From the IMG/VR virus record IMGVR_UViG_3300041416_000287, positions 1 through 64,000 of that record: a stretch of DNA of 64,000 nucleotides. One strand, 5' to 3'. Below are positions 45,177 through 48,629 of the stretch, one piece after another. The notes below the pieces were generated by a model. That model was given only the letters and a program-made list of their open reading frames with translations, did no database searches and was not told the DNA's origin. Position 1 is the first letter of the stretch. Each line of letters begins with the position of its first letter. Both the position numbers and the translations under genes were made by a program.

Positions 45177-48100
45177 TCAGATGTTCTCTAGGGTTGGGCG
45201 AACAACTTGGTAACTGCCATCGGCGAACCTACGCACAATGTATAGCTGGATCACTCCCGCCTTGTATTCCATAATCGAGATCTTAACGGGATCCGTTTCA
45301 TCTCCGACTTGAACCAAGGGAGGAGCATCATTTGACAGCTGAGTGGCACGAGTTCCAATAATACGAGCTCGCTCGAATTTGGTAATCTTGGTGATTGGCC
45401 CCTGATGAACTACGGGCAGCTTGATGTCATAAGTAATAGTCGTGTCAGTAACGGGGGGACCCTTCACGTAAGTCGGATCAGGGGTCGGCAAGATGATTTC
45501 GGGGGCTCCCTTAACTTCTTCAGCCATCTCACGCCGGGCTGCCACAATGCCGTCATTCGTATCCTTGGGGACCCAACCCCGCTTCATGTTCAACTCCATC
45601 ACCACACTCTTGAGATCGATGAAGCTTGAAAATTCAGGTTTCCCGGGCGTGTCAACAGCCAACATCTCACCGATATCATAACCGGCATTGTACATAGGTG
45701 CGAACAGCGTGCCAATAGTGTTTCGAATCGACCCATCATAGCCAATGATAATGTTCTCGAAGGCCTTGATCATACGATGCTGCATGGCCCCGGTTTCTGA
45801 AGTCTTTAGGGCCGTATCCAATAGACCTTCACGACCACCGGCTTGGAGGAAGAATAACCCTTCAGGACTAAGACCAGTAAAGAAAGAAGGGGCGATGAAA
45901 GCATTAGCCTCAGGATTGTTATCGTCCTCATCATAGGTTGGAAGTAAACGCTTTCCGCCAGTAAGAGTGGGTTTCAGGCGTTCACCACGGTAGTATTGCT
46001 GGCCGACCGAACCCATCATCTGACCAATGTTGGCGACGCCACCCTTAGTGCCAGCACCCTGATCAGTCATGACACCGATGGAGTTATCGCCAGACAGCAC
46101 ATCCTTAGCCAAACGCAGGCCGATACCCTGAGCTACATTCACGAGGTTATTAATCTGTCGCTGACGGAAGGACTCTTCGATAGGATCATCCAGCTTTCCA
46201 CCGAGCGCCTCAAGCTGAACATAAATCTTGGCTAACTCTTGCTCCAAGACGCGCTTATTCTTATCATATTCCTCACCGGTGGCTTCATCAATGGCTAGGT
46301 TCACCATATCGAGAAGACCGACAGAGAATCCTCGCTCGATCAACCATTTGCCCACTACCCACGGAGCATCGGTGAAGAAGTCGGCCGTACGCTGGGAGTC
46401 ATACTTCTTATATAGTTCTTGGATAATAGAACGATGGCTAGTACCAACATGAGATTTCTTGAGCCGACCTGAAATGAGGACGCCCTCAATGATTTGCACT
46501 CCCTTCCAGCTATAGTAGAAATCGGCGGGAAGCATGGCACTCAGAATGGCTTGCCCAGAGCGTGGATGGATGCCATATTTCACCAAGCGAGCATACAATG
46601 TACGAAGCACGTCCTGGTTCGTGATCAGCGTAAGTAACTCAGCAAAGAGATCATCATCAATACGGGTCTTAGAATCACTCAGAAGGAAAACACCGGTGAT
46701 GCTGTTCATGACGAGGCCCATAATGGGGCGATTCTGCTCGGAGGACATGATATTCTCCTTCACGTTCATTAGAATCTCCGCCTCCGCTTCGACTTCGAAA
46801 TCTTGCGGGCTCCAGATGTTGTTCTCATCACCATCGAAGTCGCAGTTCATGGGCGTAGTGTACGATAGATGCAGGCCGATAGTGAGTTGATCTCGTAGCA
46901 CAACCTCATACGCCATCACCGACTGGCGATGTAGAGTCGGCTGACGATTATTGACAACCCAATCCCCATCTTGTAGCCAGCGCTCCACAATATCGCCAAT
47001 TTGCAACCGATAACGATATTTCGGATCATAGTACTTCCGCAGGCCAGTGCGTTTTGATGTGATGTGAGTGATTCGACTAGCTTCAAGCAGAGCCGTAAGA
47101 TTATGAATGTTGACTTTAGTCACCTTTGCTTTCTTCGTGAGGACCGGGGCCCACGCTCTCGGAATACCGATTTGACCATATCGTAAAGAGGGATCAGGAC
47201 CAGCCACCGTACGAGCACAGTAATTATCGCGCTTACCCATGAGCAGGCCACGGAGCAGTGCATTCTTGCCCTGGATTCGTTCGACAATCGACAGAAAGTC
47301 CCTCATACCCATCTTCTTCCCTTCGGTCTTGAAGATCAGTTGTTTAACGAACGTGTACAATTCAGCGACGGCGCCTGGTTTGGCAGCAGCAATATTGAGC
47401 ACTTTGCGCATGATACACACATACATGTGCGTAAGCTGGTCATGATGCATAGAACCGCCCTCATGGACTGGGGGTCGAGCAATCACTGGGGGAACCAGAA
47501 TACCGCGCAAAATCATGTTGCGGGGGTGGCTGCCGGTAGTAAATCCCAATGCTTTCAAAGCGTCTTCAGACAAAGAGTCCAATATACCGAGAACTGCTTC
47601 ATATGATCGCTGGCGAGTGGTAACTATGTGAGGTACACCTTCTGCAGTCTTCTCTTCTGTTAACAATCCAACACGCCGTAATTCTGCTTCGGGAGCCATG
47701 TCTAGAATTCTCAGGACCACCTCGGCTCCATATTGACGATGATAGCAAGGGAATCCGAGCAAGTAGGAATCTTTGGGAGAAATGCGATCCAAAATGCTGA
47801 TCACAGTCTCAATGGGCATGAGGTGAATCGGATCCTCTTTAGTGACCTTCTTACTGCCCTTCTCAGGAACCTTGAACGTGATTTCACCTTTCTCCTTGAC
47901 ATCGCCAATCATGAAGGTAGGATTCTTGGCACAGGGAACGAGCGTACCGCCTCCGAGTTGAGGCTTCTGCCGCAAACACTCGTGGTTCTCACAATAGCTA
48001 GCGGTCGCGGCCAGGCGTTTGTCATAACTCTTCTGCAGTAGTCCCTGTTGTCGCATGAGATCTTCGGGAATTAGAAGTCCACCACAGTCATTGCACACAG

Positions 48101-48629
48101 AAGTCAACACCAGGACTGTTTCATGAATGAAAGCTGGATTGTAGATTGGGTGCCGAAAATCGATCAGCCCATAATGACCCGGGCAATCAATCTGCGAACA
48201 GTATTGGCAAGAATAACTCAAACTCACGACGCCCATGCGCGGATCATTTACAGATCCTACGCCCTGAAAATTCAGATTGACAACTTTAATTGGGCCCGCA
48301 ATCCGTTGCATGTCATCCCAAGAGTACAATGAAATAGCCGACTTCGTGATAGTAAGGAGTGGTAACTCGGCTTCTTTCTTGGCTGTTTCAGTGAGAATTT
48401 CATCACGCTGCTTCTTGGTTATGACGACGGCATTTTCTGGCTGTGAGAGCAGCGGAATTGCCTGTTGTGGAACCATTCCGACGGCAAATTGTTGTTGTGT
48501 CAAGGGTCTTCCTCCGGCGCCGGCGGGGGCAGCTGTTACTGGTACAGCTGGGACCCTAGCTCCCGGTTGTCGAATTCCTCCCATCAATCCAGGCGCGGTT
48601 AATTGTTGTTTGGGTGGGTTTCCTGCCAT
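45177..48629 (-). CDS. rpb1: RNA polymerase largest subunit, N-terminal (A'-like) part, fused to Rpb6/RpoK
   Basis: DPRMG, CPGHYG, GKRDNYCARTV, NRQPTLHR, active site NCDFDGDE, bridge helix GREGLLDTALKTSETG; then Rpb6 ITKFERARIIGTRATQLSNDAP...IVRR. Confidence 0.95.
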   Translation of the reverse strand: MAGNPPKQQLTAPGLMGGIRQPGARVPAVPVTAAPAGAGGRPLTQQQFAVGMVPQQAIPLLSQPENAVVITKKQRDEILTETAKKEAELPLLTITKSAISLYSWDDMQRIAGPIKVVNLNFQGVGSVNDPRMGVVSLSYSCQYCSQIDCPGHYGLIDFRHPIYNPAFIHETVLVLTSVCNDCGGLLIPEDLMRQQGLLQKSYDKRLAATASYCENHECLRQKPQLGGGTLVPCAKNPTFMIGDVKEKGEITFKVPEKGSKKVTKEDPIHLMPIETVISILDRISPKDSYLLGFPCYHRQYGAEVVLRILDMAPEAELRRVGLLTEEKTAEGVPHIVTTRQRSYEAVLGILDSLSEDALKALGFTTGSHPRNMILRGILVPPVIARPPVHEGGSMHHDQLTHMYVCIMRKVLNIAAAKPGAVAELYTFVKQLIFKTEGKKMGMRDFLSIVERIQGKNALLRGLLMGKRDNYCARTVAGPDPSLRYGQIGIPRAWAPVLTKKAKVTKVNIHNLTALLEASRITHITSKRTGLRKYYDPKYRYRLQIGDIVERWLQDGDWVVNNRQPTLHRQSVMAYEVVLRDQLTIGLHLSYTTPMNCDFDGDENNIWSPQDFEVEAEAEILMNVKENIMSSEQNRPIMGLVMNSITGVFLLSDSKTRIDDDLFAELLTLITNQDVLRTLYARLVKYGIHPRSGQAILSAMLPADFYYSWKGVQIIEGVLISGRLKKSHVGTSHRSIIQELYKKYDSQRTADFFTDAPWVVGKWLIERGFSVGLLDMVNLAIDEATGEEYDKNKRVLEQELAKIYVQLEALGGKLDDPIEESFRQRQINNLVNVAQGIGLRLAKDVLSGDNSIGVMTDQGAGTKGGVANIGQMMGSVGQQYYRGERLKPTLTGGKRLLPTYDEDDNNPEANAFIAPSFFTGLSPEGLFFLQAGGREGLLDTALKTSETGAMQHRMIKAFENIIIGYDGSIRNTIGTLFAPMYNAGYDIGEMLAVDTPGKPEFSSFIDLKSVVMELNMKRGWVPKDTNDGIVAARREMAEEVKGAPEIILPTPDPTYVKGPPVTDTTITYDIKLPVVHQGPITKITKFERARIIGTRATQLSNDAPPLVQVGDETDPVKISIMEYKAGVIQLYIVRRFADGSYQVVRPTLENI

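Follow-up and report, generated by a model that had tools for sequence, protein, structure and literature searches.

An Rpb6 domain fused to the N-terminal half of a split Rpb1 in a clade of Pimascovirales

In archaea, RNA polymerase's largest subunit is made as two polypeptides, Rpo1N and Rpo1C (A' and A''), where the N part comprises the clamp, the active site and the bridge helix and the C part comprises the rest of domain 5. The corresponding genes, rpoA' and rpoA'', are adjacent and co-transcribed, and Rpo6 exists as a protein of its own. Homology links Rpb6 to archaeal Rpo6 and bacterial omega; each of them makes the largest subunit more stable and favours its incorporation into the polymerase, and archaeal Rpo6 comes in along with the Rpo1'-1'' module (PMC13556214). 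Rpb6/omega is regarded as a latch or chaperone of that subunit, but the protein's small size and shared use, and the fact that some systems can do without it, make this role hard to probe. Here we describe a viral gene found in a window of 64,000 nucleotides, positions 1 to 64,000 of the IMG/VR record IMGVR_UViG_3300041416_000287, which represents a large peat virus with a DNA genome, a member of the order Pimascovirales. The gene (45177..48629, minus strand) encodes a single polypeptide in which the largest RNA polymerase subunit is represented by its N-terminal two thirds, with the clamp, active site, funnel and bridge helix; a flexible linker of ~58 residues and the virus's own Rpb6 core come after it.

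Comparison with the archaeal system reveals the same break point, which agrees to within ~10 residues for the N part and ~25 for the C part, and the same division of the subunit between an N part and a C part. The viral sequence is closest to eukaryotic RNA polymerase II (Pol II) Rpb1 and not to archaeal A', and the C-halves of viral relatives are much longer than Rpo1C. The halves of these relatives lie between 4.5 kb (on opposite strands) and more than 500 kb apart, in contrast to the adjacent archaeal genes, and Rpb6 is fused rather than separate. The fusion of the N-half with Rpb6 is genuine. We consider likely the combined reading that adds to it a separately made C-half, a single fusion event behind the arrangement and Rpb6 as a tethered assembly latch, where the latch is the part that we infer.

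Architecture and integrity of the fusion gene

The gene is one open reading frame (ORF) of 1150 codons with an ATG start and its stop codon at 45177-45179; all features within it lie on the minus strand. Conservation in the family was judged on an alignment of 25 relatives, in which the start methionine of the fusion protein is invariant. Residues 1-70 (48420..48629) form an N-terminal extension rich in proline, alanine, glycine and glutamine that is predicted to be disordered, where the AlphaFold predicted local distance difference test (pLDDT) falls below 50 for residues 1-71. This extension varies across the relatives, and a conserved stretch follows directly after it. Pfam and solved-structure matches assign residues 125-982 (45684..48257) to the first four Rpb1 domains and the beginning of the fifth. 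Domain 1 (residues 125-415, E 4.6e-26), domain 2 (465-623, E 1.3e-39), domain 3 (626-775, E 3.2e-19), domain 4 (818-912, E 7.3e-11) and domain 5 (919-982, E 2e-14) each exceed the Pfam gathering score. Domain 5 is partial, covering only profile positions 1-64 of 267, and corresponds to the bridge-helix region (45684..45875).

Every motif quoted in a preliminary description of this locus was found in the translation, including the catalytic metal-binding motif NCDFDGD at residues 595-601 (46827..46847), of which N595, D597, D599, G600 and D601 are invariant. The same holds for the zinc-binding residues of the clamp (C141, C144, C149, H152, C179 and C182). Among solved chains, yeast Pol II Rpb1 is the best match to the Rpb1 part (E 4.7e-99) and Sulfolobus Rpo1N the next (E 1.3e-83). 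Alignment to Rpo1N identifies residues 983-1020 (45570..45683) as the last Rpb1-homologous stretch, which ends at a conserved ...GW(V)P that marks the split point; the quoted sequence that closes with ...NMKRGW reaches residue 1019. The trigger loop and the C-terminal part of the clamp are not in this polypeptide, and the ORF ends after Rpb6.

Between the two parts lies a linker of 58 residues (1021-1078; 45396..45569), which consists of a predicted helix at residues 1022-1039 followed by a low-confidence stretch. Proline accounts for 11.5% of linker residues across 78 family members. The label of a Pro/Thr linker given to it earlier is too simple, as the segment also contains the helix and motifs that are conserved among close relatives. 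Over the same 78 members the linker ranges from 29 to 88 residues (median 55), is always in frame and has no conserved internal methionine, and both its sequence and its length drift in distant members.

The Rpb6 (RpoK/omega-like) core occupies residues 1079-1150 (45180..45395), up to the last residue of the protein, and is recognised by PF01192 and by solved Rpb6 structures. The RNA_pol_Rpb6 (PF01192) match at residues 1083-1128 has an E-value of 1.5e-09 and scores 38.1 bits against a cut-off of 26. When searched alone, the last 111 residues match solved Rpb6 chains at E 2.5e-12, spanning residues 79-144 of the 155 in yeast Rpb6. The core is 45-50% identical to the conserved core of eukaryotic Rpb6, and AlphaFold predicts a helix-helix-strand fold for it. 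The acidic N-terminal tail of eukaryotic Rpb6 is not in the viral domain, where the linker occupies that place. Nine positions of the Rpb6 part (E1086, R1089, R1094, Q1097, N1100, D1113, E1121, G1125 and R1133) are invariant in the 25 sequences, a mark of purifying selection. The earlier proposal of a fusion to a full Rpb6 core thus stands, as does the placement of Rpb6 before the stop. The stop does not come directly after ...IVRR, as had been written; the ORF continues for 17 residues that still align to Rpb6. Local pLDDT values are 72-84 for the Rpb6 domain, 70-79 for the helix at 1022-1039 and below 50 for residues 1053-1077, in a whole-protein model that is poor overall (mean pLDDT 62, predicted template modelling score, pTM, 0.38).

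An artefact was considered as an explanation of the fusion: the source is a 240,448-base metagenome contig estimated to be ~46% complete, and the assembly might be chimeric, a stop between two adjacent genes might have been lost, or an unrecognised intron might hide a connection to the C-half. The sequence is contained in public peat metagenomes, and contigs from four runs were compared over 44800-48800. In the probable source run (X1), one 24-kb contig spans the whole gene. A second run (X2), from an independent sample and study, provides a 425-nt contig (45185-45609, about residues 1007-1148) that crosses the linker with zero differences; a misassembly at 45400-45600, raised earlier as a concern, is contradicted by this bridging contig at 100% identity. 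Run X4 covers 45282-45542. Beyond these contigs, the domain list and the in-frame junction recur in 78 protein clusters drawn from JGI, ENA, NCBI and Logan assemblies, at 40-86% identity over the last 190 residues. Rpb6 is found at the extreme C-terminus in all 78, with 0-5 residues beyond it before the stop. That is to say, the form seen in these clusters, as in the 1150-residue protein here, is a C-terminal domain and not a free-standing small Rpb6. An exhaustive search of 50%-identity representatives returned ~20 further full-length proteins of 980-1200 residues with Rpb6 at the very end, and in relatives the C-half has an ORF and a start of its own. Because of the bridging runs and the 78 clusters, the sequence data exclude, as far as they reach, a misassembly, the loss of a stop and an overlooked intron, and we regard an artefact of any of these kinds as extremely improbable.

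A separate observation concerns a 9.4-kb ENA contig (L103:1000-8600), on which the fusion gene is spread over many small ORFs with Rpb1 fragments on the opposite strand. This contig is probably an error-rich, partly palindromic long-read assembly, and contigs of this kind yield false 'free-standing Rpb6' proteins in databases.

The separate C-half and the history of the fusion

Inspection of the alignment to the 880-residue Sulfolobus Rpo1N reveals that residue 980 of the viral protein aligns to residue 850, and Rpb1 homology stops at about residue 1020. The Rpb1 part is on this basis placed within ~10 residues of the end of archaeal A', which bears out the earlier assignment of the split to the A'/A'' boundary. 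Domain 5 is divided in a complementary manner, where C-halves of relatives match Pfam positions 62/66-264 and the N-half matches positions 1-64. The C-half of relatives is also colinear with residues 35-388 of the ~395 in archaeal Rpo1C. A whole-record search of the related 582-kb record G001 matched domain 5 twice, with positions 1-64 at the end of the N-half and positions 56-261 elsewhere, in a separate ORF of 873 residues located ~240 kb from the N-half gene. On a 911,103-bp record the fusion gene lies at ~595-598 kb and the C-half at ~58-61 kb, more than 500 kb apart, and on L004 the C-half is found 4.5 kb downstream of the fusion gene on the opposite strand. The fusion gene was also located on OW988864.1 (1,599,776 bases). 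For this genome, co-residence of the two halves rests on matching length: the longest contig listed under the C-half cluster P0086 also measures 1,599,776 bases, while the copy of P0086 that was actually located lies on a different 724-kb ENA contig. C-halves in relatives range from 785 to 1503 residues, with tails and sometimes inteins. These relatives make the C-terminal third of the subunit (trigger loop, jaw and C-terminal part of the clamp) from a separate gene elsewhere in the genome.

An A''-like gene had been expected outside the window. The expectation is supported by three relatives, where it is a separate gene; in the 240-kb record itself no C-half was found with PF04998 (E up to 10), with TIGR02389 or by tblastn with the C-half of a relative. 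Rpb2 and every other polymerase subunit are likewise missing from this ~46% complete record, and the absence of the C-half is for that reason uninformative about the virus. A pattern scan of the 372-kb record L003 also gave no C-half. The C-half proteins P0080, P0083, P0084, P0086 and P0087 include several of 1450-1500 residues with intein and LAGLIDADG domains (PF14890, PF14528). In two genomes the neighbours of the C-half are a kinase-cyclin gene and topoisomerase II, and the topoisomerase II adjoining the C-half on L105 also has a Hint-type insert.

To place the fusion among its relatives, 80 related virus loci, gathered with the 25-sequence alignment, were scanned for the end of the N-part, the Rpb6 domain and the C-half. 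Three states were observed: a contiguous Rpb1, a split Rpb1 with its stop 0-121 codons later, and a split Rpb1 with Rpb6 fused, the last of these in L003, L004 and protein matches. The split, unfused forms in pimascovirus-like relatives (L005-L016, with L007 among them, L028-L037, L040, L054 and others) stop at the same position as the Rpb1 part here, but differ in that their tails (0-121 residues) end without an Rpb6 domain. The tails of L043 (121 residues) and L011 (89 residues) were considered as older, degenerate Rpb6 fusions and rejected, as neither has an Rpb6 signal. A maximum-likelihood tree was then obtained by quick search from 70 N-part sequences, without loci that had fewer than 590 matched residues, were cut by a contig end or were exact duplicates. 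L030 (212,482 bases), which stops at the same split point, was thus left out.

In this tree all 15 fused rows form one clade with a Shimodaira-Hasegawa-like approximate likelihood ratio test (SH-aLRT) support of 98, in line with the suggestion in the preliminary description that this may be a lineage marker. The fused clade is nested inside a clade of 27 rows (support 100) whose members are all split, including L013, a record of 1,473,573 bp. The sister, L007, is split and unfused and ends 39 residues past the split point with no Rpb6 there. The L007 record does contain a free-standing Rpb6 of 96 residues ~34 kb away, which is 47% identical to the fused domain and has the same last three residues. 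Given the single clade, its nesting among split forms and the free Rpb6 of L007, the simplest reading is that the split is older and that the virus's own Rpb6 gene was fused once onto an already split N-half.

The N-half of L007 is itself interrupted inside the catalytic motif (L007:11580-13160). The first ORF ends ...LNAD and the frame resumes at 13157, with an insert of ~1.5 kb that encodes a 338-residue protein with a GIY-YIG-like start and resembles a self-splicing intron carrying a homing endonuclease. In a second large viral group (L014, L015, L028-L037, L054 and L030), Rpb1 is cut at the same position. Contiguous forms (L021, L024, L032 and L039) were compared with this group and are nested among split ones in the quick tree, which leaves two possibilities: an ancient split, undone later in some lineages by re-joining, or separate splits that recurred at a single permissive site.

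The split Rpb1 genes that had been noted in other giant viruses are indeed far commoner, at this same point, than the fusion. Iridovirus genomes appear to list two RPB1 ORFs. In the full-text literature we found no description of the fusion and no explicit statement that Rpb1 is split in this order. Automatic annotation does reveal the fusion, in that some JGI entries list both beta' and K/omega. On these comparisons, the split is widespread among related viruses and the fusion is confined to one clade, with no published description found.

One member of the fused clade is CAH6419044.1, encoded on OW988864.1 ('uncultured virus'). It has the same architecture as the protein here and is 65% identical to it over the C-terminal 190 residues, but is annotated only as 'RPB1', on a genome ~seven times the length of our record. 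OW988864.1 is probably the genome of Hydrivirus, which is described as a circular 1.6-Mb genome from permafrost (PMC9546926). A cultured virus, Naiavirus, is reported to be related to Hydrivirus (PMC12443978). The searched text of both papers contains no mention of the split or of the Rpb6 domain. The relatives had earlier been called pithovirus-like, which is roughly right; they are pimascoviruses near the 1.6-Mb OW988864.1 and not the isolated pithoviruses.

On the large contigs of the fused lineage, no free-standing Rpb6 related to the fused domain was found, and the closest short matches are fragments of fused genes. P0096, a candidate free-standing Rpb6 very close in sequence to the fused domain, was rejected because it is part of a fused gene that frameshifts in a poor assembly have broken up, and the other top short matches were set aside as lying on contigs of less than 1 kb. 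There is weak evidence, then, that the fused Rpb6 may be the only copy in this lineage.

A proposed role of the tethered Rpb6

Attachment of Rpb6 to the C-terminus of the N-half would make its binding intramolecular and near its site, with the stoichiometry fixed at 1:1. The C-half, made separately, could in turn be clamped at its C-terminal tail by the tethered Rpb6, such that the two halves would be held together. Like Rpb6, RpoK and omega, the viral domain scores above the PF01192 cut-off, and a contact with the C-terminal tail of the largest subunit is predicted for it. That the fusion hard-wires the assembly latch had been put forward before and stays a suggestion; the sole direct test of it is a model of the complex between the Rpb6 domain and the C-half of the same relative genome. 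This model gave an interaction prediction score from aligned errors (ipSAE) of 0.44, versus 0.00 for the best of three controls, and was rated as weak support. The mark used for this score is reached by 51 of 78 solved complexes and by 2 of 108 mismatched pairs, where only five of the 78 solved complexes score 0.60 or less. Confident contacts in the model involve the N-terminal part and the C-terminal tail (residues 686-706) of the C-half. The tail up to residue 695 corresponds to yeast Rpb1 up to residue 1446, and the remaining contact stretch lies just beyond the aligned part.

The linker offers a different explanation, in which the gene works like a polyprotein: the fusion would only ensure co-expression, and a protease would cut the linker to leave free Rpb6 in the mature enzyme. 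The linker is long and partly of low confidence, and a protease might recognise the short motifs in it that are conserved in close relatives. Set against this, no known cleavage motif was identified in it, and its sequence and length drift freely in distant members (29-88 residues). We consider processing of this kind unlikely.

A further explanation starts from the host, where Rpb6 is common to RNA polymerases I-III (Pol I-III). The fusion might mainly stop the exchange of Rpb6 between the viral polymerase and all three host enzymes, rather than join the halves. Such exchange is real, since incorporation of host Rpb6 into the viral polymerase is reported for ranaviruses, members of the same order (PMC8734342). 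Among the split relatives that have no fusion, however, the sister lineage included, a free Rpb6 is kept in some and lacking in others. Insulation from the host is moreover compatible with a latch and not exclusive of it, and as the main purpose of the fusion it strikes us as improbable.

Several points weigh against the combined reading of a genuine fusion, a separate C-half, a single origin and a tethered latch, which we prefer. The latch draws on homology and on one weak model, and that model could be a recall of solved Pol II structures. The AlphaFold model of the whole protein is too poor to judge the path of the linker or how Rpb6 docks on the N-half. The linker may also be cut after translation. 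A complete enzyme cannot be shown for this virus, given that the C-half, Rpb2 and the other subunits are missing from its record. Finally, the claim that there is no second Rpb6 depends on a word-indexed protein search and on incomplete contigs.

Genomic surroundings and implications

The convergent neighbour of the fusion gene is a PEBP/PBP-family gene (44236..45051, plus strand; Pfam PF01161), which is not a polymerase part. A PBP gene also adjoins the fusion gene in L086, L104 and L106; on OW988864.1 it lies a few kb downstream of the fusion gene. The local gene order is conserved in relatives (window 44236-45051 and 49966-50958; L086, L104 and L106), and the closest relative has genes for a YqaJ-type recombinase and a glycosyltransferase upstream of the fusion gene. 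Within the window, the ORFs at 48816-50210 and 49966-50958, both on the plus strand, overlap by 245 bases. The true start of the second is probably further downstream, since its YqaJ domain begins only at residue 120. Elsewhere the window contains a protein kinase gene (53025-54530) and a gene for a 774-residue XRN-type 5'-3' exoribonuclease (55863-58187). In 2-kb bins, G+C reaches 0.56 (20001-22000) and 0.53 (56001-58000) versus a window mean of ~0.45.

The Rpb1N-Rpb6 junction provides a simple single-gene marker in metagenomes for the Hydrivirus-like branch of Pimascovirales. In such genomes annotators should count on a pair of 'RPB1' genes and on Rpb6 lacking a gene of its own; completeness estimates and marker phylogenies built on a single RPB1 gene will otherwise score them wrongly. 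For polymerase biology, a lineage in which Rpb6 is welded to half of a split subunit constitutes a natural test of the latch, and a cultured relative in which to study it may exist (Naiavirus, PMC12443978). A bolder view, possible though doubtful, is that Rpb6 has become a required, cis-acting tether for the split catalytic subunit throughout the clade and also bars its swap with host Pol I-III. If the cis-tether is real, the order of assembly would be hard-wired in the structure of the gene, and the junction would be a clean marker of a family-level group of giant viruses.

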